Shown here: one piece after another, positions 6,001 through 50,140 of the stretch
Layout: each line of letters begins with the position of its first letter
Position numbering within the stretch: position 1 is the first letter of the stretch
Assembly (NCBI GenBank): GCA_904063045.1
Contig: CAJFCJ010000028.1
Coordinates: forward strand, 558,001-622,000
Origin: Dimorphilus gyrociliatus
Lineage: Eukaryota > Animalia > Annelida
DNA length: 64,000 bases
Reading direction: 5' to 3'
Position numbers and translations under genes: made by a program
Notes under the pieces: model-generated
What the model was told of the DNA's origin: nothing
Seen by the model: only the letters and a program-made list of their open reading frames with translations
Databases searched by the model: none

Positions 6001-6944
6001 GACCTTTCTTGCATTAAACCTACACTACTGATGGACCGGTACTCTTGATAAGGATTTTTACTGTTTGTATTGATAAAAGATAGCTTAATTTGCTGATTGA
6101 TACCGAAATCAGCGTTAAGTAAGTTTTTTTTGAATCTTTAATAAATTTCTAAGAATAGTAAAAAAGTTTGTACAAACCGTTGAAAGGATTTTGAGAGTTT
6201 GCTAATAAATGACATAGGAAAACACAAATTAAAGAGTAATAATGCATATCCAGTTTTCTTTTCGAATTTTTAAATTATATGCAAGTTTGCTCCATCAATC
6301 ATCTTTTTCTGTGAATATAATATAACACCAAGTTAGTCTCTATCTCAGCTATCCGAATGCTCCCATACTACTGGCAGATCGAGAAACTAGGCCAATAGTA
6401 TAGGTTTAAAAACTGACATGCGCACTGGGAATTCGAGTGTTGATTGGATAGTTTACATTTGCCGCTAGATATTCAAAAAAGTTTTTGGGGTTTATTCAAA
6501 ATTTGTATTCTATGTTGCATTGTTATCAAAGTCAAGAGGGAGCAGGTGCCTTGAAATCTAGGTCGTTATGTATCCAAGATAAGAAAGGCATACACCCTAT
6601 ATTTTTTTAATAGAAACATATCAACAATACGCCATCTATTATCAAATTTACGTATTATTCAAAACAATCAAAAAACATTTATCTCAGCCAAGTATAAGTT
6701 TTTTTCCAAAAAAAAAGAGAAAAAAGTAGAATAAACATATTTCTCTAAGTCAAATAATGTAACTTAAAAGTTACCGATAAATAATTATAGGCCTAGAAGG
6801 CAAGATCGCTTTTTAGATTATAAACGCGTTAGCGATATAATCAGTCAGTGTTGCATAAAAACTTTTCTAGTGGCTCCTTTGCAAAAATGTTTAGCATGAA
6901 AAGAGTAGTGTCTGTATAAGTAATAGTGTATAAGCAATATATCA

Positions 6945-6947
<3 letters not shown>

Positions 6948-6985
<38 letters not shown>
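6948..6985. repeat. (TA)n microsatellite
   Basis: About 19 uninterrupted TA units. Confidence 0.9.
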
Positions 6986-6986
<1 letters not shown>

Positions 6987-7602
6987 CAAAAAGGACATTT
7001 TTTAGTGTACATGTGTGTCCTTTTACCTCATTTCCAACCTTGAAAAAAATTGTTTTTTTACAGCTGATAAGATAATAAAATAAACAAATTTTTTTTACTT
7101 CATAATTTAAATTGAAAAATATAGACACATAAAATATATATTATCTCTTTCATCCATAAGATTACACTGCTATTGATTCAATTATACTTAAAAGTTACCT
7201 CTTTTCCTATATAAGGCATATAAGGAATTTATATAATTCATATTTTAATATTTATATATACACTGTATATATAAATATATAAATACTCTTCAAGATTGGA
7301 AAGATTAAATAGAAGAAAAGTTATTTTTTGTTAGAAAACTTGTTTTAGACATTTTTAACAATAGCTATTGTAAGTATAATCTATCTTACAACTACTTTCT
7401 AATTTTAAATAACGTACCTATTCATAGATTCAAACTTATTGAAATATATCTTTATAGTTGGTTTTACCCTATTTTCTTTAGCTAATAAACTACTTATATA
7501 ATAAAATTTAACGTTAGGTGGCGTAGTGGTAGGCATGTAAATAAGGTTTTACTGTATTGTTTTAATAGGGAAGGGAGAGGGGGAAAAACCTGTTAGAGAC
7601 GT

Positions 7603-9901
7603 TTATATTAAAGTTATTTCACAGATTTCTTCGGGTTGACCATTTCCAGATCCGAATAGGACTATGTAAACATCATTACACAAATCATTCTGACATTCGC
7701 ATATGTACTTGCACTTTGTTGCTTCCGCAGATTCGCTAGTCCATGTGCCAGAGCAGATCATCTTCAGTTTTGGATTTGTAATATCCGTAAGATATATAGT
7801 TAGATAATTATTTGAATCGTCTAGAAGATTACGTTCACTAGTAGAATCGTTAAAAGTAACAATAACTTGTAGAAACTTCTTGTTGAAGTTTTTTGGCTTT
7901 AATTTTATCAAGAAATAATTAGATTTATCAAATTTAGTACACGTTGTTTCATCTTTATCGTACATGTAGGCAAGTTCTAAGTGTTGATTACATAATGTAT
8001 TATTGTTTAAAGTATTATTTGTATTCGTATATATGTCAAATGAATACGTTTTAACTTTCTTCTTTTTCTTTGCTTTATCTATTAATTAGAAAAAAGTTGA
8101 CAAACAGTTATTTATTGTTATTGTTACGTAATTGAATTGTTTGTCTTTATTTTTATCATATAAAGTAGTTATATATTTTTTATATATTTTACCTGAAAAC
8201 CAGTTAAATATTTGAATTTCATGCGCTAAAGTTGTAGATTCTGAACCAAAGCGAACTTTATTTGGGTCCAATTTATTACCAGTAGAATTTATTGACAGTA
8301 ATGTTTCTTGTTTGTCAAATAAACGACCAAATTGTATACTCTCGCTGTTCCATTTTACAAAGAATTTCTCCCATTCTAAGTATTTTGGAGACAAAGAACC
8401 AGAATTTGACAAACCGTTATACGTATTTAATACTGCTGTTTCATTGTTAATTTCCAACTGAAAAATAGGTAATAAAACGATTGTTAATAGGTAATTTAGA
8501 ATATTTGTCTCTTATCTTTGTCTTTACTTTAATTAATGTTTGATTTTCCTTTAACAAAATCATTATCAAATTACTAAAAGTATTCTCTTGAGCGTTTAAA
8601 CTTTTAATACTAAATTCTATTATATTCCAATCTTTACTTTCAGCTTTATATAATCCATTAGAATTTAAGGAATCTATTCCAGAATAGTACGAAAATAGTG
8701 TATCATCTGGAAAATATTAAGATATTTACCAAATGACCTAAAAGATTTAATAGTAAATTTATCATTATAATGAATTTTTTTTTGTTACCATTATTAAACA
8801 TTCCTATAAATACTATTCCAACTTTATCTTGGTCTTCGGACCAAACTTCTTTAACAGTTAATTTAAACCATTCAATATTTTCAAGTTCCTTATCAAAGCA
8901 ATTTATCTTATAATCACTGTTTCTTTCGATTTGTAATAGTTGTTTGTCGCCATTAGACCATAATATTTTGGCTACTTTTATTTGAATATTTCCCATAGCT
9001 GTTATTGGATTTATTATACAGAATTTAAAATTGGACACTGATTGAGAAAGATTAAATAATAGATTTATTTCGCTATCATTACAACTCAATCTCTGACATT
9101 TTGATGATAGCCAATAGTCAAAAGAATAATTCTGTATTTGATTGCAATCTTTCTTATCTTCAGTACTAATATCAGTGCATTTTGTTATTAGGTTACTTCC
9201 GTAAACTTGGCTCATTTTCTCACCATTTTCGCCTATAAGTAATAATAAATATAAGCGACTTATGCATATAAATATTGAAGAGAAAGGAAATTTTTAAGTT
9301 GAGACTTACTCGTGTAACCCCATACTCCTATCTCCCCAAGGGCAAATTCGAATGGGTCTGGTTCGTAATATCTCTCAGGAGAAAAAACAAGAGAAGATTG
9401 ATCTTTTAAATGAACTACATGACATCTATAGTCATAATCTTTTTGAAGATTTAGGAAAAGATTTTTCGGAGTGTCTTCTTCCTTGAAAGTTACTCGAATT
9501 TTCTCAATAAAGGAAGTTGTATTTGAATTTCTTGTGAATCCTTGACGAAAGCAAATTTGCTGAATGTCATATTTTCTTGCAAATGTTACAGTAATATTAA
9601 CAAAAGTACAAGATTCTTCTAAGCCGCATTTTATTACAAATGAACTTGGTTGCTGCCATATTGGGCTTAGTGAATTTTTACATTCGTAAGTAAAATTAAA
9701 TTCCTCAAATTCGGCTTTACTCGTATTGCAAATAGCGTTATTTTCCAATGAAGCAAAATTTTTAAAAGCTCCATCTGTTAAAGAAGATTATAATTGAAAA
9801 TATATTATATAATAATGATTTCTTGAAATAAAACAACCTAAATTGAGTTGATAAGTTTTCAATAACAGCGAATATATGAATAATATTATAAAGAGAAACA
9901 T
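7603..9901 (-). CDS. Uncharacterised secreted multidomain protein, paralogue B (630 aa): signal peptide, two galactose-binding/discoidin-like domains, FAMeT (Methyltransf_FA)-like domain, C-terminal Cys-rich domain
   Basis: Six exons: 9901-9838, 9774-9310, 9232-8789, 8706-8528, 8457-8193, 8078-7603. All five introns are GT-AG (63-114 nt, phases 1,1,1,0,1) and the exons sum to 1893 nt (631 codons). Hydrophobic N-terminus MFLFIILFIYSLLLK, many NxS/T sequons, no TM helix. WEKFFVKWNSESIQFG resembles the FAMeT-domain F-W-x-x-W...I-x-x-G motif. Domain names are by motif resemblance only. Confidence 0.8.
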
Positions 9902-10386
9902 TGGTCTTTCTCCTTCTTCTTCCTAACGTTGAAGTAGCAATGAAAACAGTAAAAATGAAAAAGAGAATACAAACAATCAAACTTCAATTAGTATATGAAA
10001 TACAACTAATTGACTTCATTAAAAACTGTAAAATGAAAAAGTCCGCTCAAATGATTTAATTGTCTTCTTTATTCTATCTCTTTGATGATTTATTAATTAT
10101 TAATTATTAAATGAAGGTTACTCTTAATTAATTAAAAATAGTTGAAGGAGAAAAAAAAGGGCACAAACTTTTTTTTTTAAAGAAACAATATAAACTATTA
10201 TTCTGGAAATAAGATAGTAAATTACCAGGATGATTGATGATACGAGTCTATCTATTGGCAGTTTAATAAATCAAAATATTTTTTTTCTTATTTTTTATAT
10301 TGAATATACAGTATTTTAAGAAAGATGAATTCTGCAAGATGGTCATCTTCAGTAGGTTAATTCGAGAGATATCAAAAACAGACTTT

Positions 10387-12543
10387 TTATTCTATGAAAT
10401 CATATGTTATATCACATATATGAAATGGTAGATGATTTACTTTTGTATACATAATATTAATATTATTGCAATTGTCTTCAACACACGTACAAGCAAATGA
10501 ACAGGTTATTAAATTACCCGCCCCTGTTTGACTATTTAATTTACATATAGACAAAAAATTTGAAGAGGTGCGTACAAGAACTACAATATTATTCTGGTTT
10601 TGTCTATCGATATCACAGGCATCAGGTAAATCCTTTACAGTAATTTTTACTTTAACAGTTTCCCTATCTGACGGTAAATTATTGTGTTTAACAGTCATTT
10701 TCACCCAATTGTTAAATGAAATACAACTAGCCATATTTCTATCAATTAAATTTTCAAAGTGTTTCTTCATCAGACAAGAAGAAGGACTATTAGCTTCAAC
10801 TGTAAAATCCTTATCCAAATCTGCGGCTAAATTTAGAGCATACAAAAAGAAAAATTATCACAACGTTATCTATTGTATTATCGATTAATTAATTAGGAGA
10901 TTTTACCTTCAAACCAATCAAGGAATCTAATTTCAAAGATATTTAGCTTATTTATTGTTTTAATTGCCAAACTTTCCGGTAAGAATGGGCCGTCTTTGTC
11001 TATAGAGAGTATCTCTGTTTCATTTTCTAAATCATCGGAAAGTATTCCAAATCGTACTTCATCAGACCAATCAATGTAAAAATTTACCCATTTGTTACAA
11101 CTTAAATATGAATTTTCTGAAGTTTCTTCATCACCATTAACGGATAATATATATCTAGGTGCCGTTAATTTTTCCATAGTTAACTTTAAAGAAAAACTCT
11201 TTTAATTAATAGATTAATATAATTATCTATAAATCATCATTACGGTCATAATTGGAGCCAATTTTTCGTATAAGATTATATAGAATCCATTACAATTTGA
11301 ATGGGATCTTAGAGAAAATTTTGTAATATTCCAGTTAGCAGGTCTAGCTTTGTAAAGTTTATATTCATCTTCACGAGCTTTTATTGACAACGAATTTCGC
11401 TCTATTTTATAAGGAAAAAAAGACATGAATTTATACAAAGAATCGTCTATATTAACGGTCTACCAGATTTGATTACTGCTATCCAATCAATTGTCCAAAT
11501 TTGGGGTATTTCAACACCTGAGACAGCTTCTGGAGTAAATTTAACCCACCTTTCAATATCTGATCCATTATAATTTAAACATTTGACGTTATGAGGTGAT
11601 GAGTCAAGATTTATACTCTGAGTATAGCCTGAGCTCCAAGTAATAAGCCAAAAATTGTATTGACGATCGACCACATTTTTAGCGCATATTTGGTCAGGCC
11701 TGATTGCTTCGGTTAATGTAACATTAAATTCAAGACCATCCACAGGGCAAGACGGCAATGGACAGTTTACATCGTCGTCGGTAGGTCCATATTTTATAAT
11801 GTTGTTACATTTTGGAGATGGTATTATAGAAAGACAACTATCTAGATAATTTCTTCCATACTCTTCGGCCGGAAAACTTGTTATTTCGGCTTTACAAATA
11901 AAAGAAAAGAATAATAAATAATCAGTTGACTTTCCTGAAACAAAAAACAATTAAACGGAAGAAAGTACACCAACGGTTATGTGCCCATACGCCGACTTCA
12001 TTAAATCCAATATCATTAACGCTTCCAACAATTGTCAACTCTTTAACGTAAATTCTGATTTTATTACAATGGACAAAGTTGATTAAATGACATCGATACT
12101 CGTAATCATCCTCCAAGTCAAGTTGGCGAGTTTGACCATTACACTGGACATCAACTTTTTTGATTGCTTTTGATTGACCGATATAAGTGTTTCCGTAACC
12201 TTGGCGGAAACATATCAATTGCAGATCGTAGGAAGTTTTAAAAGAAATATCAAAAAAGCTAGTATGGCACATGCTAGAGCAATTAAATAAGAGAGGATTA
12301 GGATCTCTCCATATCGGCTTTAAGGCATGAGTACAGCTATATGTAAAACCATTTATTGTTTTTACACCAGGTGAAACAGATAGGCATGTAGCTCCGGCAT
12401 CCACAGAGGCAACGTTTACGAAAGCTCCATCTTAAAGAAGCATTATACATTATGAAGAAATAATAATAAAATATAATTAACAAACTTGTGTTAAATTGAA
12501 GAGAAGAGCGGAAATTTAAGATAAGAATGAAGAGAATTTTCAT
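10387..12543 (-). CDS. Uncharacterised secreted multidomain protein, paralogue A (604 aa), same architecture as paralogue B
   Basis: Six exons: 12543-12486, 12430-11975, 11889-11464, 11401-11244, 11183-10907, 10826-10387. GT-AG introns of 55-85 nt, phases 1,1,1,0,1; total 1815 nt (605 codons). Signal-like MKILFILILNF. Motifs shared with B: GAF-x-N-x-AS, ICFRQG, DY-x-YRCH, E(V/I)GVW, YG-x-N, W-x-x-F-x-x-x-W, IC(D/E)IT. Confidence 0.8.
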
Positions 12544-14163
12544 CTTTCTATATAGAGACCTATCTAAATCAAAACAGCAGCTTTCCTTCGACCCTCTATT
12601 TCTAACTGTCAATCACCTTTCTTTCTTCCTCTTTTTGTCCATCTATCTAATGGATCCGATAATCTTTGTGAAAAGTAAGTCATAAATATTTAAGAAGTGC
12701 ATATTTCGATATAAACAATTGAATAACTGGAAAATATAGAAACAATAAATTGAGAATGATCTTTTTTTTCTGTTTATGAGTGTTATGAAATAATAAAAGA
12801 CCTAATTGTTTGAAAATTCATTTATATACAGTATATATAAAGTAAATGTATAGAGATAAATTACTGATTAATAAGTTGTAATACCTTTTCCTTTTGTAAA
12901 AGTTCTAGTAGTGTCATATATTTTAATATATTAAACAATTGTTTGTCCAAGTTCTTTCTAATCTTTTCTATGTTCTCCGTTTCTATTTTATCCCGTTTAC
13001 TGTTTATCTCTCTGTTCCTAACCATTACCGTAGAATATAAATAAATATATATATATATATATACTGTATATACTGTATATATAGGTTTTTAAAGGAAAAT
13101 CTTTATAAAAATAACACCAGACAGAATATCTTGTATGATAAATGCTGTAACAAAATGATAAGATTTTATATAAATATTCACATGTTATATACAATTGAAA
13201 CATTTTAAATATATCTATTTTAATGAATAAACTATATTTAGAATTGTCTATTTTTGTTATAATATTTATATAACAGTATAATAAATTTGTATTGGGTTCT
13301 TAAACGATTTATTAATATTTTTGTTCGAGTTGATCAATTTTCATTTTGATGTGATATAGTTATAATCTTATTACTTTTGTTCAATTTTTAGAATTAGGTC
13401 AAAAACGTTCAATTACGTGCTTTTTTATTAAAAAATTTTCTTCTAATATACCATCGGCTAGATGTCGTTAGTAATGATTTTTGTATTTTTTAAAAAAATT
13501 TGGTGTGTACTTTATTCCTTTGTTAAAGCTGTTAGTCATACACCTATCCACTCATAGTGTTCCAGCCCTGAGTGAACTGAAATGTTTGTAGTCAAGCAAA
13601 AGTCTCTTATTCAATATTGCTTTAAAAAATGTTCAATTAAAGCGCCATCTGTCATTTATAACTCATGCCCTACTTTTCAAATACAATGGCTATGACACAG
13701 GGTGTACAAAGGACTTGAAAAGCATCAACAACTAGGCCCATGAAACCCGTAGTATTAAAAAATAAATAACGGCCATAAAAGAGTATTAAATCATGTTTTT
13801 CAAGTCTGCTTCTGTGTTTACGTTGAGTATTTTAGAAAGTATACCGAAAATACGAGGTTTTAAGGAGAAAGAAGGATAAATTATTCTCTTAGCATAAAGA
13901 AAAATCTATCTATTTATCTCTACATCGCAAAGTGAAGAAAGAGAAAAGGGAAAAAAGGATTTAAAAGAAAAATAAGATCTACTTATTCGTCCATTTTTTC
14001 CTCATTTGATTATAATTCCAATAGAGACAAAAATAGACATTAGTGTGTATATATATGTTTATTTGCGGTCAAGATAGAAAGGAGAGACAGACGTCGAAAG
14101 TTGAACTGTATTTTTATCTCTTTAGTTTAAGATTTTTGCTTGTATAAAAGAAATAGAGAGATT

Positions 14164-15190
14164 ATGACTAATGTTACTAATACTTTAAATTTACTTAATG
14201 AAACAACAACAAATTTGTTATTGACTGCCGTTTATAGTACTTTTCAAGTTGAGAATACAACTCGAATTGTTGAGAAGAGCTCGATAAAAGATCCTAGCAA
14301 TAATGATGATAATGGTGATATAAATGCTGGAATAATTGCGGCTTGTTGCGCAGGAGGACTTGTAGTTTTATTTGCTTTCGTTTGCCTTGTACTTCGATAT
14401 AAATGCAGGTTAGTATCACTTATTATAAAATATAGCAAATACAGTATATGATTGATCAGTATATAAATAGAGATGTGCACTGTATATTTCATTTTTCAAG
14501 ATTTATCGATTAGATATCCATTGCTTTTTGAATTCAATACTGTTTTAAAGGATGCCAGCAATACCGCTAGGGGTAAAATGGTTTACATGTATTGAACAAG
14601 AGGATAAATAGATGTAGCTAAGGTGAAAATATATAAATTTTATAGTACATATATATGTACATAAATCTAATATATATGTATATGTGTCAATGGGAGTAAA
14701 CAGCTTATGAAATAAGGTCGTTTAGGACAAAATACAATCTATTTCAAGGTTATAACTATCGCTTTCAAACAGAAGTGTATCGACGCCACTAAAATCCAAT
14801 AAGAGACGCTTCCAAGAGAATTTTGATAATAAGAATTTCGTATTTGAAGATGAGACTTTAAAAATTGAACGTCCTCTACCTCCAGAACCAAAAAACCATA
14901 TTGAAGTATTAGAAAGAGCAGAAGAAGCTATTGAGAGTTTAGATTTATCAGACGGTATCACAGAAAAGAAAATATCAAATAACGATCGTAAAATTAACGG
15001 TGATATCAATCTATCTGAAAAAAGTAACCTGTCAAATGGTGAAACCGTGGTTGAAGTTCACAGAGAACTAACGGAAAGTGAAAAGAATCTAAGGGACTTA
15101 ACAATTACACCAGACGAACTGGATTATCAGTCCAGCATAAATGAAATAGACAAAGTGTTAAATAATTTGGTCGATGAAGAAAGCATTTAG
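14164..15190 (+). CDS. Orphan single-pass membrane protein (about 220 aa; N-glycosylated N-terminus outside, acidic cytoplasmic tail)
   Basis: Exon 14164-14408 (MTNVTNT...GIIAACCAGGLVVLFAFVCLVL RYKC) joins across a phase-2 GT-AG intron to exon 14773-15190, a 139-codon open frame ending DEESI*. Sequons NVT/NET/NTT precede one hydrophobic helix followed by basic residues. Extra small exons in the intron cannot be excluded. Confidence 0.65.
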
Positions 15191-18100: not shown

Positions 18101-20405
18101 ATAGATTAATGCCGGCAAATGTAAATAATGTATATAGTATATTCTAATATTGTCTATTATATAGCAGTCTTAATGGATTTTCAGCTTCTATTTCTCCATG
18201 TATTTGTTTTAAAATGATATCTTGAAAAGGAAGATAGAAAATGAAAAAATTCACATTTCATGATTAAATTAGTATTGGAAGAAGATTGAAAGAATAGTAA
18301 ATGTTATAGAGTAAACAAAACAGAGATACGTTTTAAGCTGCAACTATAAGTAAACAAACTTTTTAAAAATACTTAGAATGCTTATTACGTAATACATCGA
18401 CAAAAAGAAACAAGTTATAGGGAATAATCCAAAATTCAATTACAATAAACATTATTTTAGACTTAAAGATGTTGCTGTGAATAAGTGATAAGAAGATTTA
18501 AGAGTCGTAAGAGTGATTCTTATTCTCCTTTTATATAATCCATTGAATAAATGTTTTAGTTGATAGTAGATTGTTTTAAATAAATAAATATACAAAAACT
18601 ATTCATAATATGAAAGAATGACCTATTAACATATAATATCTATTATTCGTTTTAAGTGAAATATACAATATAAAGTAAAAGACTTTAACTTGGAAACTAA
18701 TCTTTAAAAATTAGCGTTTCTTTCAAATGAACATGAATGTCACTTGTTAATAGTAAAAAATAGTTTAAATCGTTATTTTTAATCTTGTAGTTTATTTTTA
18801 TCTATCCCTTATTTAGATCTCGAATCCCTTTCCCTTAATGGCTCTTTCATTCTTTTCTATTATCAATATTTCGAGAGTCTTTCAATCTACAGTCCATTTA
18901 TCTCTACCCTTTTTTTTATAACGAGAAGGAGTAAGCATATGTTTCAACTATTAGTTAGACTATTTACAGTGAAATCAATGTAAGGTTAGTAAAAAAACTT
19001 ATCTATATCTATATCAATTAGATATATAAGGATAAATAGAATAAGATCCAAAAAGTTTGCTTGTTAACTAGATTTAGATCAATAACACCCATTTCAGGGA
19101 AAAATATCATTTTAAGAAGAGATAGATAGATAGATAAAAAAAAAGAGAGAGAAAATATTCGTGGGTGAGAACCAAAGATTACACGTAGAAGTTTAGATAG
19201 GAGGAATATAGCAAACGGAAGAAAAAGAAGAAATAAAAAACTACTTGTATCAAATTTAAAACACTTCAATTAATGATATGTTACTAATTGGTTGGTCATT
19301 TAAATGGGGACGCGAGAGTAATGCTTGGGTTAATGTTCTAAATTAATACTCTAAGGCAAATGCAGTACATCTATTCTATATTTATATATTAACACAATAG
19401 CACAGTTTATAAATACCTAGCTTTTGGATATCATCTAGCCCTATACTAAAAATTAATTTGTATGACGTATAATGTTACATTTTTAGATCATATTTATATC
19501 TCTCTTTCAAAATGGAGGATAGGAATAGCATCTTATTCGTTCTAGTTATTTTTCTTTATGGTTTTATAGGTAAATTGCCCTTTCATATCCTACATATTTA
19601 TGCTATATTAACAAGAAAATGTGATCGTTTCTTTACAATATATCATCTTTTATAAAACAACCGATGTGTTGTATGATTGAAAGCTACTTTTACAACTTAA
19701 TGCTATCCAGGCGCCATTTGACGCCTCAAAGCTTTCGATGACGCTTTTAAACGTTTCCCACCAGTCTTATTCTTTTTTCTCGCAGTATAACTACAAACAA
19801 TATTACACAGTAAACTTTTAACAGTATGTCATATTTTCATAATAATAGGAAGTAAATCGCTGAATTTTTTATGTAGGTAATTATCTTTTGTTTTCCTTAA
19901 ATTGACTTATCCACCGAATAGATAATTTTCCTTTAAAAAAATCGTTACTCTATCTAACTAACTTGTGAGATGACATTTTGAAAATATTGAATGAATGAAT
20001 GAATGGTTGAACGATTGAATGAATTAATTTAAATTGTTAAAGTATAATTTTTGTTATGTAGAATATTTCTATTATTATTGTTATGTGTTTTGTATTTATT
20101 TATTCACTGTAAGACGCCATTAAAAAATATCAATTAAACTAAGAAACAACCATCACGATCGATGGTTTGGATCTGCTTAAATCTAATTTGTCATATTAAA
20201 AATAGGTTCTATAGATACTAATATATAGAAAACTTTAGATATTTGTAAAATATCCTTATCATCCTTGTGTTTTTTCTTTCGTTTTCCCTTTCGATCTTTG
20301 TCTGTGTGTGTGTGTCTGTCTGTCTGTCTGTCTATTTATATACACATATATTTATATATATATGTTTGTCATCCCCTCGCTCACCCCATCCCCCTCTCTC
20401 TCTCT

Positions 20406-20408
<3 letters not shown>

Positions 20409-20437
<29 letters not shown>
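20409..20437. repeat. (TC)n microsatellite within a longer low-complexity tract
   Basis: Uninterrupted TC units, with adjacent GT/CTGT/TA repeats upstream. Confidence 0.9.
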
Positions 20438-20442
<5 letters not shown>

Positions 20443-23400
20443 ATTTCTATTTATTGCATACTTTTAAAATGTTACTCTTTCCACCTCTATTGAATTATTC
20501 AATAATGTAATTCAATTGATAGAAATTAAATAATTAATTCTGTTCTCTTCTCAATAGATTAGTTTCTATATCTTGTACACATCTTACTCGTCTCTTCTAA
20601 TTTGTTACAGATTGTTTATCAATTCTCTGTCTTGATATCTTGTTTATATACGATTAAAAATATCGTTTTAGCATACATACAAAAAGATGCAAGACATTAA
20701 TTCCATCATTTATCGATAAACTTGTATAAAGTATCACAAAGGTAAAGAATAAACGAATGAAAAGTACTTCCTTCTAATTTATGATGATAAAAAAAAGAAA
20801 ATTTTGTTTATATTGTCATTTTAAAGAAACATATTAGTAAAATTTTATGAGGAAAATTTCAAAAAGTTTATTCTACTGAAGCTTTTGAAGAATGTTTGAT
20901 GTTTTCATTTTAGAAAGTGATTTCCAGACTTAGATTGATTGATAGACATTTACTTGGATTCTTTAAATGCTAAAATTTTCTAAAACAAAGACTAAAAAGT
21001 TTTATAAAATATGGCGGTTAAAAATAGATAGTAATCTACTGCATTTCCACGATCTATTTAATATGTAAAGTTGTTAAATTTTGTTTTTTAAAAGAAGAAA
21101 GAGTTTGTTAAGGAAGGCAATAGATAAGAAGGAAAAGGAGGAAGAAGAGATGTGAAAAGAGAAAATGACAAACAGTTCTAATCAATAGTTAAGTTGTTTA
21201 GTGGCTTAATTTGTTAAGTAGTTTATTCCTTTATCTTTTCTTTTGTGAAATAGTAGAGTCGTTATGCTTGTTTTAAAATTTTCTTTTTCTTACATAAACG
21301 CAGATATATCTGTATGTAAGCTCATTGGAAGTAGCTATTGTTAACCTGGATCCATTTGGAGGTATAATTAATCGCTGAGAACATTTTGTTGAAGTTTTAA
21401 AGAAAAGGTGAAAGTGGATTTAGTGGACATCTCCTTGAAAATGGAAATTGAAAAAGAAAAATCGTATATAATATTAAATATAGTAGGATATAGTAGCTTC
21501 CGATTTAATATAAATATTGCAGTTTAAGAGCAGATGACGTTTATGGAATACAGAACATTTCCAGAATCGTTTATTGGGTTCTGCTTTTGATTAACACGCT
21601 CTTGTATTTTAGACTTCTTTTCTATTCGACGGCCACCGGTTATTTCCTCTTCCCGTGCGTATTGTACATCAATTTACGGCTAGTTCTGCGTTTATTTATA
21701 GGAATTGAGCTTCTTCTTATTGCCGTTTGATTTTTTAGCAAACTTTTTACTGTTCGTCTAGCTTTTCTATCTATAAAGAAATGATTAAGGAAAATGGGGA
21801 TTGACTAAAAGGCATAAAGAAATTACGTACATGACGAAAGACGGGAAAAAAACTCTTCTTAAAAGTTCCTAGATATTCCAAGGTCATAATTTCCCTACCA
21901 TACAGTACAACAGAAGAAATTCAAATATGTTTGGTAGAATTCGTATCAAATTACGAATAGCTTTAGATTTCAAGTCATTATTACGATAAATTTTAGACGC
22001 TTTTCCAGTTTCTTCATAGCGGAATTAAGGTTTCTTATGGATTCATCAGATGGAACAAATTTCGAAGGTTTCCTAATTTAATTCATGTTTAATTTTATAC
22101 ACTTTTCCATTTTGAACAACCTTGAATTTTATACATTCTAAGAAAAGAATTTCCCAAAATATCTTATAAAAATCATGGATAGAAAAAATGAAGATAAATT
22201 ATAAAGAATCTTCTAGCATATAGGAGATTGTTATAATAATTGTTACGATTAAATCTTCCCCACTAAGAGAAAAAAAGAAAAAGACAACCTCAACTATAAA
22301 GTGTTGACTTGACAATATTTACTTATGAATTTTTTTCTATTATCAAAACAATTGTATCAGATATTTGATACTATCATAACCACGTTCAATTGCTAGTATT
22401 CCTCTATCGATTAATTATACTTGTATACTGAACCGGAAGTGTACATGCCCTTTTCCGCAAGTATGATTTTATTTTCATAATACGAAATATGTGAAAATCT
22501 CGATATTTTCATCAAAAAGCAGTAATAATAACAATTATCGTTTACTTAAAGAGAAAAGCCTGATTAGTGTAAAATTATGACGTATCGGTAAAGAGACGTT
22601 CTTCCTATCTAACTCTTTTCTTTTCCCCTTCGGCTTTTTACCGTTTTATTATTTTTCCTTCTATTCGGTTAGCATATTTTTTCTTTTAAATTTTTTATAC
22701 CTCTTCTGCCTATAATTATTTGTAATTTTACGGTCCAAAGACTAGGACATGACTCTGCTCAGCTGAGCAATCTTATTATAAAAAAGCAATTGTCCAGACT
22801 ACGATCACAGTTACTTCTATTTCAAGTTTAGTGCAAAATCCTATGCCATACTGTCTTATTAGTTTAAAGTAAAAAAGAACTAAAGTATTTAAATACTTTG
22901 TTGTTTCACATTTGCTTTATTAAGCAAAGAAAGAATTGGTTAAAAAAAGAAAAACTATGGAAAATATATCAACGTTTTATGAAATTTTGAAACAAATATA
23001 AGTGAAAATATATAGAGAGAAAAGAAGCTAATACATCGATATATTGTTTGTTCTTACAAACATTATTATTTCTATAATGTTTAGTTATAATCACGATTGG
23101 TAAAGTACTTTTAAAGCGGTTAAACGATATAGTTCTCTCTACTGATTTGATCTATAAATCTGATAATCTCATTCTAAATTACACTGCGCCTTAGGATCCT
23201 TCATTTTTACTCTGATTAGTAAGTCTTCGACGACAATTGGCAACAGAAAGAAACGCTGGGGCGAAAGAGACGTTTTTGTGCTTTGGCATTAGCGAAGAAG
23301 GGGGTGGAGGTTGAAATGAGGAAAGAAAGGTGTAAAGAGCCAGGGGGAAGTATTGTTAGACTATTTTCAAAAAAAGAACGAAATTTCTCCCAATTCAACA

Positions 23401-42156: not shown

Positions 42157-44023
42157 ATGTCGACCTCTTTCCCATTTACGACAAGACATACTCCCTTAAA
42201 CAACACGGATGGTGACATAAAGTTTTACGAAACCGTCCAGTGGATGATTGGTCTTTTCTTCACTCCAATCACCTGCATACCGGGAGTTGTTGGAAATGCC
42301 GCCATTATCATCATCTTCACGCAAAAGAATATGAGATCATCAACTAATGTTTACCTTATGGCATTAGCCGTATCAGATTTCTTAAAAGTATTCAACGATT
42401 TTCTCTACTTCCTGGTAGTATTATTTAAAGAAATTGACGATGATCTCCACCATTTAGCCTATGTTCATATGTATCCATACGCTCATTTTATATTTGGATA
42501 TTCCACTTGCGTTTCAGCCTTGTTGACAGTCAGTGTGGCAGTTGAAAGATATATTCTTGTTTGCCATCCCACACGGTCAAAGACGTGGACATCGATAAAG
42601 AAGGCCAAAATTTTTTCAGCAAGCATCTATATTATCGTTGTCTTGCTCAACATACCGCACATGCTAAGGTAAAATAATGAAATCTAGTCTTTTTAATTAA
42701 TCTCATTACAACATCATTATAACAAAAACAAAAAAAGTATAACATAAGAGAAATTCTAAATTTATTTCCAATTAAAAAGTTAATGCTTGACCGAAAAAGC
42801 GAATAGAATTTCCCCTAAGAATCTCAACCGGAAGTGGTAGTTATTTTAGCGGGGGATGACAGTGTTAAAAGCAATCGTAAACCTTAGGGAATTAAGAAAT
42901 CATCTAAAAGAAGAAAAAGAGTATATAATTATTCCTTCCATGTTCCATACATTGGAAATTAATCTAACAATTTATTAATAATTTTCATAATAAATATTTT
43001 AAACAAAGTCAAAAGAATTGTATGAAAAGAGACATTAGTATCTAGCACTATGATAGTTTTTATTTCCCTTGCGAAACAAAACGTCTCGTATTCCATTAAA
43101 AAGAGAGAGAGAGAGAGAGGTTATAATCGTCACCTTGAAGATATAAAAATTATTAAAAATGTTCAGTTAGGGCTTAGTCTACCAAATGGAAAGAAAAAAA
43201 AGATCAATTTTCTCTTGCTTTTATATTCCGTAATATGAAATATTAAAGTAAAAATTTGCTTTCTTTCTCTCCTCTCTTCCTTTTACCTTTTATGCGAAAA
43301 TTGCATATTTTTTAGTTGAACCTTTCGCTCTTCTAATTCGATCCATGTGCACTTCATTCATATATCATTCCTTCAAGTTTACATATTATATATGACTCTA
43401 TATTTCGTTGTTTTTACCTTCTTAGATATGAAAAAAGTGTCCAATTTAAAGTACTAAATGGTCGAAATGTTAGTGAGCCATCTGTAAAAGTGACTGAATT
43501 ATGGGAGAATAAAAAATTCGTAACGGCTATCAATTGGATTCAAAACCTTATCCGATCTATAATTCCTGTCTTCATTCTTATTGTTATGAACTTTTTTATT
43601 ATAAGAGCTCTTCGGAAAACAAGAGCAAATAAGAAATTGGCGTCCAGGAACAGAATAACTACAATGCTTATCATTGTTATTATATTTTTCCTATTATTCA
43701 TATGTCCTGATGCTATTATGTCGTTCTTCACTGGCTACACAGAAGAACCAGCAAGAGTCAGAGCCGTCAGAGAGATTACAGATTATTTGTTATGTGTTAA
43801 TTCAGCTATTAACTTTTTCCTATACATTATTTTTAACAAACTATTTAGAGATGCTTTTCTCGATATGTTCTGTACAAGATGCTTAAAAAGGTGGAGGAGA
43901 ACAGAGAGTAGAAGAGACGAACGGGAAAAGGAGTACCGGAAATTGGCTGATGGGAGTCCAAGACATCGTAGTAATATTAATGGAGTTGTCGATGGTAGCC
44001 GAACGGAAACGACAACAATTTAG
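42157..44023 (+). CDS. Class A (rhodopsin-like) GPCR of the FMRFamide/sex-peptide(MIP)-receptor-like peptide receptor group (369 aa)
   Basis: Exons 42157-42668 and 43426-44023 (phase-2 GT-AG intron). Motifs: TM1 GVVGN, TM2 STNVYLMALAVSD, TM3 VERYILVCHP, TM6 FICP, TM7 NSAINFFLY. An in-frame TAA at 42130 precedes the ATG, and an acceptor at 42127-42128 implies an upstream 5'UTR exon. Confidence 0.93.
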
Positions 44024-46579: not shown

Positions 46580-49500
46580 ATGAAATTCTTTATTATATTT
46601 TTAGTAATACTTGAAATAAATAGCGAAAAATATATTCCACTGGATGGTTTATGGTCTCTTAGATCAAATAGTAAGATAGAATAAAGAATTGTCACTTAAT
46701 TCGTCTTTAAAAGGAAAATTACATTCAACAACAATTAAATTTACAGGCAAAAACTTGACAAATATTCCTGCAACTGTTCCTGGTAATGTCTACACAGACT
46801 TAAGAGCGCATGGTATACTTAAAAAGCCACTATATTACAGAGATAATGATCAGAAATACAGATGGGTCAGTAGAGTTGACGATTGGACTTATACAAGAAA
46901 TTTTACAGGTTTTACCAAAATCAATTAGCTTAGTATAAACTAATAAGATAAAGAAGCTTAGCATTATTGTATTTTTCCATTCTTTCTATTCCAGTCTCCC
47001 AAGACGACATAAAACATGGAAAAATTGAACTAGTTTTCGAGGGATTAGATACAATTGCCCAAATCTATATAAATAAGATAATGATTTATGAAGCAACCAA
47101 TATGTTTCGACTCTACTCTTTTAACATAAAAAGCTTGCTGAAAGCGTCCTTGAACAGTATAACTGTAAAGTTTTCTTCTCCTATCAAATATTCAGCTGCA
47201 AAAGCATCTCAATATAAAAAGAGGTTTTCTTATGACGTTCCTCCAAAGTGCCCTCCAACTGTGCAAAATGGAGAATGCAATTTTAACTTTATCAGAAAAC
47301 GAGCGTCCAGTTTCAGTTGGGATTGGGGTCCAGCTTTTCCCGGAGTAGGAATTTGGAAAAGCGTCTACCTAAGACTCTACTCTTCTGCTACTTTAACTCA
47401 AATTGTCGCTTATCCTGTCAAAGACGGTAGAATTTTCAATTTATAATTATCTAACACTTAATAAAGCGACCAATAGATGGCGCCTATGTTTGGTACATTT
47501 TTTAGTAAAACTCGGTCTCGACCAATTCGATTATAAAATGTTAAATAAGTCGAATATTAAAGAGCTTTATTATCATTTATATACAGTATAGTATATAATA
47601 TATATACTGTATATATGCATAATATAGATAGTAATATAATATGTACTATACTACTGTATATACACTGCATATTTATATAAAACTTCTTTGTGATAGCCAA
47701 GTTGGGCTGGTTTGTTAAAGGCTCTCTATATTTCAACGTAGTTTTGGCTCAAAAAGGAAAATTAACCTTATCCATCGCCAATGTTATTAAAGTAAGCAAT
47801 GACGTAGTACTGTTTGCTGATGAGCATAAATACGACTTCTCAATGCATGTCATCCGAGTAAGTTAATTTTCGAATCTATTTAACTTAAGATTTTACAAAC
47901 ATTCTAAGAGGTAATAGATACCGCTCTTTAGTTTTATTTTAACTTTGTCCTTCCTTGCCTTCTCCTCTTCGACACCTAGCCAATAAAGCTGTGGTGGCCT
48001 AATGGCTATGGAAAGCAAAATCTGTACAATCTAACTATCAAGTTTACTACTTCTGACGAAAGTACTGAAAAAACAGTTGAAATCGGATTTAGAACAATAG
48101 AACTTATACGAAATCCAATTGGGAACGATAAAAAAGGAGATTATTTTTATTTTAAAATAAATAATCTACCAATATATATTAAAGGATCAAATTGGATTCC
48201 AGCTGATAGTTTTCCCAATGAAATAAGCGTTGCAAAATTAGAGTTACTATTAAAATCAGCTAAACTTACAGGAATGAATGCTTTAAGAGTTTGGGGAGGT
48301 TTGCAATCAAATAAATAATTCATTTAATTCAGAGATAATTATTTATATATTCCACTAATTTTAGGTGGAATTTACGAATCAGACAAATTTTATCAATTGA
48401 CCAATCAATACGGAATAATGATATGGCAAGATTTAATGTTTGCTTGTAGTATGTATCCAAAAGATGAAGAATTTCTTGTTAATGTGGCAAGGGAAATTGA
48501 CTATCAAGTTTTAAGGTTATCAAATCATCCATCTATAACTGTATGGTCGTTTAATAACGAAAATGAAGCTGCACTAAGAGAGAATTGGTACAACACTTCG
48601 AATAATTATCGCCAATACTATGAGGATTATATTAAATTATATATTAAGACCATCAAGGGAATTGTCGAAAAAGACTCCACTCGTCCTTCTACCCCTTCTA
48701 GGTAAGGAATTTGCATTATCACCCTGATATCATATCACACAACTCAAAGCTACTTTTTTATCTTTTATTACGAAACCAGTCCATCAAACGGTCTATTAAC
48801 TGAGAAACAAAATTGGGTTGCCAATAATCCTCAAGACCCACTTTATGGAGACGTGCATTACTATAATTATATAGGTGATAGCTGGAATTGGACAATATAT
48901 CCAATACCACGGTTTTTATCAGAATTTGGTTTGCAATCTTGGCCGTCAAGTTACACTATGAACACGGCTTTCGACAAATCGGATTGGTTCATCAATAGTT
49001 CAGTTGCTAGTAATAGACAGCATCATCCGAATGGTACTAAAGAACTAAATGCTCAAATTCAGAGTCACTTTAAAGATTTGCCAAAATCTAAAGACCCCAA
49101 AAAATATTTTGAAGATTTTATGTTTCTTACACAGGTTAGTAGGTATATATATACAATATATATTGATATTATACTGCATTTTTATTCTCTTTAATAAATA
49201 TAAATGATTTTCCTCTCTCTCCGTTTCTTCACATTTAGATTAACCAAGCTGAAGGAATACGGACAGAAGCCGAACTAATGAGACGTATGCAAAATTTTTT
49301 CAACAGTAAAGGGCAAGGCCATACTATGGGAACGCTATATTGGCAATTAAATGACATTTGGCAAGCGCCAACGTGGTCTTCAATAGGTCTTTTTTTCACT
49401 TTAAAAAACTAAACAAATAGTAAATATATTCTATTATACTATGCTTCTATCCAATAGATTATCTCGGCAAGTGGAAGATGTTACAATATTTCGCCAGGAG

Positions 49501-50140
49501 ATTCTACTCCAATCCGACTCTTTCAAGTTATATAGATAATGATGTTATTAAATTACATTTTCTACAGGATATCTTACCCAATAATGACACAAACGACAAT
49601 AATCTAAGATTTAGGTCTTTGCTAAACCTAGAGCCCGGAAACTATGTCAAAAAGAGTCTTTTAGTTTTAAAAGTAATAGTCTTCAAATGGAGTTCTTTAA
49701 ATCCTATTGCATCTCAAAAGTTTAATATCCAACGGCCAATTTATTCTTCTGCGGAAATATATCAACAAAATATTAGACAACTGTTACAAATGGCAAATGC
49801 TTCGAAAAGTGAACTCTTTCTTGTCTTTGAAGCCACTTCCGACAATATAATTCTGTATAATTGGATACCTCTCGCCTATTATAAAGACATTAATCTTCCT
49901 AAACCCAAAATACAAATTAAGGACTTAACTAAAAAAACAGCAACCAAGTTTACAATTGAATTATCTACTGATAACATTGCTGCCTACGTTTGGCTAGAAG
50001 TTTATGAATGTCAGGGTTATTTTTCGGAAAACGGTTTCTTAATGTACAGGAGAGAGTATCAAGTGGAATTTTACAGTTGGAAAGAATGCAATAATCTTAA
50101 TGATATAACAGTTAAGACTTTGAACCATTTATATAATTAA
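46580..50140 (+). CDS. MANBA: Lysosomal beta-mannosidase, glycoside hydrolase family 2 (895 aa)
   Basis: Nine exons: 46580-46670, 46747-46908, 46995-47426, 47697-47857, 47980-48298, 48365-48701, 48780-49134, 49239-49386, 49458-50140; total 2688 nt. Signal peptide plus motifs FEGLDT, SFSWDWGP, LWWPNGYG, KGSNWIP, RVWGGGIYE, WQDLMFAC, NNENE (acid/base), RFLSEFG (nucleophile), LYWQLNDIW. Confidence 0.96.

Follow-up and report, generated by a model that had tools for sequence, protein, structure and literature searches.

A tandem gene pair of Dimorphilus gyrociliatus and its large, almost lineage-restricted family of secreted proteins with discoidin-like and Methyltransf_FA-like modules

Expanded families of secreted multi-lectin proteins in invertebrates are large, clustered in tandem, fast-diverging and led by a signal peptide. 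Two domains known from other settings are relevant here. The F5/8 type C domain (PF00754) occurs in discoidin I of Dictyostelium, neuropilin b1, factor V/VIII C2 and bacterial CBM32. Methyltransf_FA (PF12248) is present in arthropod farnesoic acid O-methyltransferase (FAMeT), together with DUF3421 or a second PF12248 (PMC10015273), in secreted CPAMD8 (PMC9363628), and in UP5, a secreted component of the abalone shell matrix (PMC6003135). We analysed a 64,000-nucleotide window of the annelid Dimorphilus gyrociliatus (contig CAJFCJ010000028.1; C28:558001-622000), in which two neighbouring genes, A and B, encode secreted proteins composed of two discoidin-like domains, a FAMeT-like domain and a Cys module. 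The family to which they belong is real, has no name and is almost lineage-restricted. It resembles the expanded multi-lectin families in size, clustering, divergence and signal peptides but differs in its domain set. Known folds are joined in a combination for which literature searches yielded no description, in agreement with the unfamiliar architecture noted in the original prediction made from this DNA.

The tandem pair and its public annotation

The DNA of the window is eukaryotic and AT-rich (GC content 25-36%), with short introns. Reading of the sequence between positions 7603 and 12543 revealed two paralogous minus-strand genes arranged head to tail, gene B followed by gene A, with 485 nucleotides (nt) between the stop codon of gene B and the ATG of gene A. 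Six exons were assigned to each gene; splice sites were placed by eye with guidance from family alignments.

10387-12543, minus strand: gene B, ATG at 12543, TAA at 10389-10387, ~604 amino acids (aa)
12543-12486, minus strand: gene B exon E1, signal
12430-11975, minus strand: gene B exon E2, module 1
11889-11464, minus strand: gene B exon E3, module 2
11401-11244 and 11183-10907, minus strand: gene B exons E4a and E4b, module 3
10826-10387, minus strand: gene B exon E5, module 4 and TAA
7603-9901, minus strand: gene A, ATG at 9901, TAA at 7605-7603, ~630 aa
9901-9838, minus strand: gene A exon E1, signal
9774-9310, minus strand: gene A exon E2, module 1
9232-8789, minus strand: gene A exon E3, module 2
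8706-8528 and 8457-8193, minus strand: gene A exons E4a and E4b, module 3
8078-7603, minus strand: gene A exon E5, module 4 and TAA

The exon sums are divisible by three in both genes, with 1815 nt for gene B (605 codons, 604 aa) and 1893 nt for gene A (631 codons, 630 aa). The exon limits of gene A were needed to keep the conserved Cys and Trp positions of two family alignments, A1 (module 1) and A5 (module 4). Both genes start with a short hydrophobic exon, which ends with a phase-1 splice directly before a (D/N)GAF.N.AS motif. No transmembrane (TM) segment was predicted in either protein, as the 19-residue Kyte-Doolittle maximum outside the signal exons was 1.21. Exon-wise BLASTP of gene A against gene B yielded 28% identity for module 1 (E 6e-21), 24% for module 2 (E 5e-06), 33% for module 3 (E 4e-08) and 23% for module 4 (E 2e-07). 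Judged by their sequences, genes A and B are clear yet distant paralogues.

The original prediction had described two minus-strand genes 485 nt apart, each with a signal peptide and four modules that correspond between the genes, but no TM segment. All of these features were recovered here, and its motifs NVAS..GATC, ICFRQG and GFNEVGVW were located in the sequence. Its exon limits were partly wrong, since module 3 consists of two exons in both genes and the last exon of gene A begins at 8078 rather than at an ATG at 7965, a change that restores a conserved Cys. The tandem pair is real; the prediction had missed both the very large family behind it and an existing public model in which the two genes are fused.

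This model, CAD5125711.1 (DgyrCDS13917, 1059 aa; P0002), is a single GenBank entry spanning both genes, and its residues 1-561 are 87-100% identical to the gene B exons. Were it correct, the locus would be one gene encoding an eight-module protein and the two-gene reading would be wrong. The model does combine exons from both genes, and P0001 is a similar one with four discoidin stretches. The join, however, leaves gene B 43 codons ahead of the in-frame TAA, and the part cut off includes two Cys that are invariant in the family as well as the C-[DE]-[IV] conserved at the C terminus (alignment A5). It also bypasses the ATG and signal exon of gene A. In the gene A half, 21 residues of module 2 are deleted, two conserved Cys among them, the first half of module 3 is missing, and the last exon begins too late, with the loss of one more conserved Cys. 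Since all eight full-length paralogues have 608-651 aa, one signal peptide and four modules each, the locus was read as two genes. We give the single-gene alternative very little credence, and CAD5125711.1 is considered faulty, the apparent product of a wrong fusion of two genes.

P0001 itself, with 1018 aa and four discoidin-like stretches, likewise has the look of two adjacent genes fused into one model. Another paralogue model, P0007 (1155 aa), runs on into a FLYWCH zinc finger (E 3e-9) and a MULE transposase (E 1e-13). It is probably a fusion with an adjacent transposon, which hints that family members sit in transposon-rich DNA. Upstream of the pair, an open-chromatin peak at scaffold028:571479-571853 has been assigned to the promoter and transcription start site of DgyrT16072 (PMC7854359 supplementary table). 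If scaffold028 is C28, the peak corresponds to window positions ~13479-13853, ~1 kb upstream of the gene B ATG; it may instead serve a gene on the plus strand, one exon of which (14140-14451) encodes a TM segment.

Domain identity and folds of the four modules

The query of every search was a single exon, a paralogue segment from one exon or a database protein. The modules of the two genes and their scores against family hidden Markov models (HMMs) are as follows; the iterated HMM used for module 2 was built from modules 1 and 2.

11970-12395, minus strand: gene B module 1, divergent F5/8 type C domain whose six Cys are invariant in the family, family HMM E 2.2e-38
11464-11889, minus strand: gene B module 2, more diverged second copy, iterated HMM E 1.6e-15
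10907-11401, minus strand: gene B module 3 (two exons), family HMM on the second exon E 2.3e-4, iterated 3e-11
10387-10826, minus strand: gene B module 4, family-specific Cys-rich beta-sandwich at the protein end (alignment A5)
9305-9739, minus strand: gene A module 1, divergent discoidin domain; a 57% identical copy is P0047 (Logan assembly)
8789-9232, minus strand: gene A module 2, second discoidin-like copy, iterated HMM E 1.9e-18
8193-8706, minus strand: gene A module 3 (two exons), family HMM on the second exon E 7.5e-5, iterated 2.6e-13
7603-8078, minus strand: gene A module 4, counterpart of gene B module 4 at the C terminus

Six invariant Cys and the motif Y.CENALEP.W characterize the module-1 domain in alignment A1, which comprises 26 copies. 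The module-1 HMM also matched module 2 in many paralogues, and modules 1 and 2 are therefore copies of one domain; gene A module 2 retains all six Cys as well as the Trp and Phe conserved in the domain. Sub-cutoff matches to PF00754 (F5_F8_type_C) were obtained for 8 of the 26 paralogues (best E 4.8e-5), as well as to DUF7402 (6 of 26) and F5_F8_type_C_2 (5 of 26), and P0007 reached 20.1 bits on PF00754, below the cutoff. Profile A1, in turn, reached P0053, P0055, P0056 and P0061 with library-wide E values of 6.6e-7 to 1.4e-4. These four proteins score 36-53 bits on PF00754, above its cutoff of 28.2 bits (P0056, 53; P0061, 47.6; P0053, 44; the E values of these three against A1 being 6.6e-6 to 1.4e-4), which provides a transitive link from modules 1 and 2 to F5/8 type C. 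When the window exons were compared singly with Pfam, neither PF00754 nor PF12248 was matched. The candidates that did appear (LolA, PapD_N, Pectate_lyase_5 and DUF7522; E 0.036-0.24) were rejected as noise.

The fold was predicted with an AlphaFold (AF2) model of gene B module 1 (me27f2004cdbe), which had a predicted local distance difference test (pLDDT) score of 74. Foldseek matched this model to APC10/DOC, IFT25, muskelin, CBM32 and factor V/VIII C2, with E values from 5e-4. In the VIA comparison, all 50 top rows were galactose-binding-like folds (Z 9.2-11.6, root-mean-square deviation (rmsd) 2.3-3.6, 108-131 residues), including discoidin, CBM32, DOC and neuropilin b1, and many of the structures were solved with bound sugars. 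A profile search of PDB sequences with modules 1 and 2 returned only APC10 (E 1.6). The stretch from Cys4 to Cys21 of module 1 is variable, and model confidence is low there. On these profile links and predicted folds we call modules 1 and 2 highly divergent discoidin (F5/8 type C) domains. They share the fold of the PF00754 proteins, and their N-terminal N[VI]A..GA.C..S is typical of the superfamily, whereas the six invariant Cys, the Y.CENALEP.W motif and the sub-cutoff Pfam scores set the worm domain apart.

For module 3, the fold, Pfam and language-model evidence derives from paralogues, and the window genes are tied in by the family HMM. PF12248 was the top Pfam match for P0011 and two paralogue sequences of alignment A3 (E 0.0013-0.006). 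A query of the ESM Atlas with paralogue L035 found PF12248 on 16 of the 30 nearest clusters (score 0.96-0.97, 205-211 of 256 features in common), which represent mollusc, echinoderm and arthropod families. Modules 3 and 4 were modelled jointly from a single-exon paralogue (L033:2887-3795) with alignment A3 (31 rows including the window exons; pLDDT 81.8). Residues 12-164 of this model were closest to galectin carbohydrate-recognition domains (CRDs) in the VIA comparison, with Tl-gal at Z 14.3 (rmsd 2.3, 128 residues) and galectin-4C at Z 14.0 (Foldseek E 3e-7), followed by other concanavalin-like lectin folds.

The likeness to galectins concerns the fold alone: sequence identity was 7-12%, and none of the 31 module-3/4 sequences had a Pfam galectin match (PF00337) at E <=1. 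Although the predicted fold of module 3 is closest to CRDs, its conserved C..W..FW and FG.G are of the Methyltransf_FA type. These motifs differ from the known galectin sugar-binding signature. Modules 3 and 4 had no match when PDB sequences were searched by profile. Taken together, the sequence matches and the model support a Methyltransf_FA-like domain with a predicted galectin-type beta-sandwich fold. Module 3 resembles PF12248 proteins in its Pfam and language-model neighbours and in its secreted setting. CPAMD8, however, pairs the domain with macroglobulin and Kazal domains, the worm proteins with discoidin-like domains, and no PF12248 protein with two discoidin domains in front was found.

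Within the family, module 3 varies in two respects. Gene A lacks both Cys that are kept by gene B and most paralogues, and their joint loss fits one disulfide bond between them. An intron interrupts module 3 at the same place in genes A and B, whereas the module occupies one exon in most paralogues checked and shares a single exon with module 4 in four, which indicates that introns were gained or lost within the family.

Module 4 is specific to the family. Alignment A5 shows five conserved Cys together with D29 and T34 (Thr-Cys), and the module ends in C-[DE]-[IVM]. In the joint model, residues 165-303 are all-beta. Among the 31 module-3/4 sequences no Pfam match at E <=1 was found for this module, and no language-model neighbour exceeded 0.79. 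The only fold match was 7nit (BbgIII), residues 1046-1208 (Z 10.7), and the module stays unassigned. A third discoidin copy was considered and, on the evidence at hand, rejected, as hhalign against module 1 gave a probability of 0.6% and the language-model search again offered no neighbour above 0.79.

These results agree with the module assignments of the original prediction, which had likened modules 1 and 2 to F5/8C and galactose-binding-like folds and module 3 to Methyltransf_FA and had left module 4 without assignment. The comparison by AlphaFold and Foldseek that it had recommended matched gene B module 1 to galactose-binding-like folds.

Copies in the genome and taxonomic range

The source assembly (77.9 Mb) was searched for further copies. 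Gene B module 1 as a single query detected 54 places and profile A1 detected 111, of which ~76 were strong, i.e. with E at most ~1e-20. In-frame stops were present in 9 of the ~76 strong copies. Single-sequence searches with modules 3 and 4 recovered almost only the window pair, and family HMMs were needed for these modules. With them, modules 3 and 4 were found downstream of module 1 in most of 20 extended loci, which indicates that the four-module layout is family-wide. A signal start is common to all eight full-length paralogues. The window genes conform to the family layout throughout, with a signal exon, two discoidin-like domains, a FAMeT-like domain, a Cys module and the terminal C-[DE]-[IVM] (alignments A1, A2, A3 and A5 and HMMs).

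Pairwise identity of module 1 has a median of 29% and ranges from 19 to 76%. Of the strong copies, ten are on large contigs (C2, C5, C12, C18, C26 and C28) and ~87% on small ones (C36-C265; lengths seen 19-305 kb), often several on one contig. Some copies are near-identical, namely C50/C113, C221/C252 and an inverted pair on C129. Such copies could be haplotigs, or duplicates of very recent origin in DNA that assembles poorly, and the true copy number is therefore given as "dozens".

Outside this genome the family is scarce. In a HMMER search of 1.84 billion representative proteins, profile A1 had only 64 matches at E <=0.001. The source was looked up for 30 of them: 17 were D. gyrociliatus models, 9 were found in Logan assemblies only, 3 in ENA metagenomes and 1 in merc, a marine transcript catalogue, and 1 was a hypothetical protein of the tubeworm Lamellibrachia satsuma. 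The Logan pieces are orthologue-like copies that differ from the D. gyrociliatus assembly; P0016, for example, is 65% identical to the C2 copy. A word-based protein search with the full-length alignment as query, which carries little weight, found two family members and no other species. It has been shown here that the family is large, deeply diverged, often clustered, partly decayed and almost confined to the Dimorphilus lineage. The lineage-specific secreted family supposed in the original prediction is thus borne out, and the BLAST-type check of family size that it had recommended gave dozens of genome copies.

In the domain tree, the module-1 and module-2 copies stand apart. Gene A groups with P0047 (SH-aLRT 99), and the sister of this pair is gene B (SH-aLRT 91), which places the tandem duplication of A and B before the split from the source species of P0047. 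Module 1 of gene A is 57% identical to P0047 but only 29% identical to that of gene B.

The ENA and merc sequences P0053, P0055, P0059-P0064 and P0066-P0068, from marine metagenomes and transcripts, form a well-supported clade (SH-aLRT 99) of short single-domain proteins of true F5/8 type C. These and Lamellibrachia P0056, a protein that the tree did not include, are the closest relatives that the family's discoidin-like domain has outside the family. The Lamellibrachia satsuma protein KAI0234515.1 differs from the worm proteins in being membrane-anchored, with two domains and mucin-like linkers, and lacks modules 3 and 4.

Elsewhere in the window, two plus-strand open reading frames (ORFs) at 42157-44023 encode a rhodopsin-family G protein-coupled receptor in two parts, its front half and its back half (7tm_1; E 1.5e-16 and 1.8e-10). 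Plus-strand exons at 46967-50140 resemble a beta-mannosidase of glycoside hydrolase family 2 (Glyco_hydro_2_N2, E 1.3e-32; Ig_mannosidase, E 2.9e-15). Simple dinucleotide repeats at 6845-7128 and 20265-20510 give the ORF translations IYIYIY and SLSLSL.

Possible functions of the family

From the architecture, the folds and the lack of a membrane anchor, all of which were observed, we infer a function. The original prediction had proposed glycan-recognition, mucus/matrix or immune proteins, roles that are likewise putative. Each gene would give rise to a secreted disulfide-rich protein of ~600-630 residues with four beta-sandwich modules in a chain. This chain might act as a multivalent binder outside the cell, its lectin-type modules gripping surface ligands, such as glycans, of microbes, food particles, mucus or egg envelopes. 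Its many diverged versions would represent a repertoire of specificities kept by gene birth and death, as in other invertebrate recognition families. Secretion, multiple lectin-type folds, many Cys, copy number, divergence, clusters and decayed copies are together best fitted by a multivalent extracellular binder. As context, only nine expanded families, mostly of locally duplicated, immune-implicated genes, have been reported for D. gyrociliatus (PMC7854359), and the discoidin-FAMeT family may or may not be one of them. We tentatively suggest, at somewhat less than even confidence, that the proteins serve in multivalent recognition or adhesion and evolve by birth and death. More doubtful is the specific proposal of a dinophilid-specific, fast-diversifying repertoire of ~75 secreted three-lectin-fold proteins for germline recognition of microbes or food. 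If it holds, its logic would be comparable to that of snail FREPs and amphioxus VCBPs, with a domain set not described before.

Several points weigh against recognition or adhesion by these proteins. The gathering cutoffs of PF00754 (28.2 bits) and PF12248 (24.2 bits; P0011 16.8 bits, E 0.006) were reached by no family member. Sugar-binding residues could not be identified in the modules, and a shared fold is no proof of function. Discoidin domains bind lipids and proteins too, and DOC and IFT25 share this fold without binding sugars. Uncollapsed haplotypes on small contigs may also have raised the number of copies counted.

The proteins might alternatively be structural or adhesive parts of extracellular material such as mucus, cuticle or egg cocoon, with modules that cross-link the matrix. 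They are secreted, Cys-rich and multi-domain, a Methyltransf_FA protein is known from a shell matrix (UP5; PMC6003135), and discoidin domains are found in proteins of the matrix and of adhesion, with neuropilin, factor V/VIII and CASPR2 among the fold matches. Yet ~75 copies at 29% median identity, accompanied by pseudogenes, are rarely needed for bulk structural proteins, and low-complexity or repeat linkers are absent; on balance we regard a structural role as less likely than recognition, yet as a live alternative. A part in reproduction, for example in sperm-egg or male-female recognition, is another live alternative but appears improbable. The family is deeply diverged and lineage-restricted, discoidin-type lectin folds are used for cell-surface binding, and a reproductive role would explain fast divergence, given that the species has internal fertilisation and dwarf males, but ~75 copies are many for gamete recognition and immune recognition fits the same sequence patterns equally well.

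The resemblance of module 3 to PF12248 could also be taken to mean that it is catalytic, like the farnesoic acid O-methyltransferase-like enzymes that synthesize sesquiterpenoid hormones. Against an enzyme here, it is disputed whether FAMeT itself is catalytic. The proteins are led by signal peptides and contain lectin-type domains, and the predicted galectin-like sandwich is not a Rossmann fold of the kind that binds S-adenosylmethionine. In addition, PF12248 is also present in secreted CPAMD8 (PMC9363628) and in the shell-matrix protein (PMC6003135), and a catalytic module 3 is hardly credible. Multivalent extracellular binding remains the function that we tentatively favour.

D. gyrociliatus is a model of conservative genome compaction, and the paper on its genome emphasizes how streamlined the gene set is (PMC7854359). 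In this compacted genome with few other expansions, ~75 copies correspond to roughly 0.5% of all genes. Secreted lectin-fold proteins that number in the dozens and are near-invisible to Pfam, named only "DgyrCDS..." and partly mis-modelled make up a sizeable unexplained part of the proteome. Many of the 270 genes assigned to 45 species-specific orthogroups of D. gyrociliatus (PMC7854359) may belong to this family. If its members are recognition molecules, they would offer a tractable case of a diversified defence or adhesion repertoire in a miniature animal, and Methyltransf_FA, a widespread but functionally obscure domain, would gain a testable extracellular binding role.

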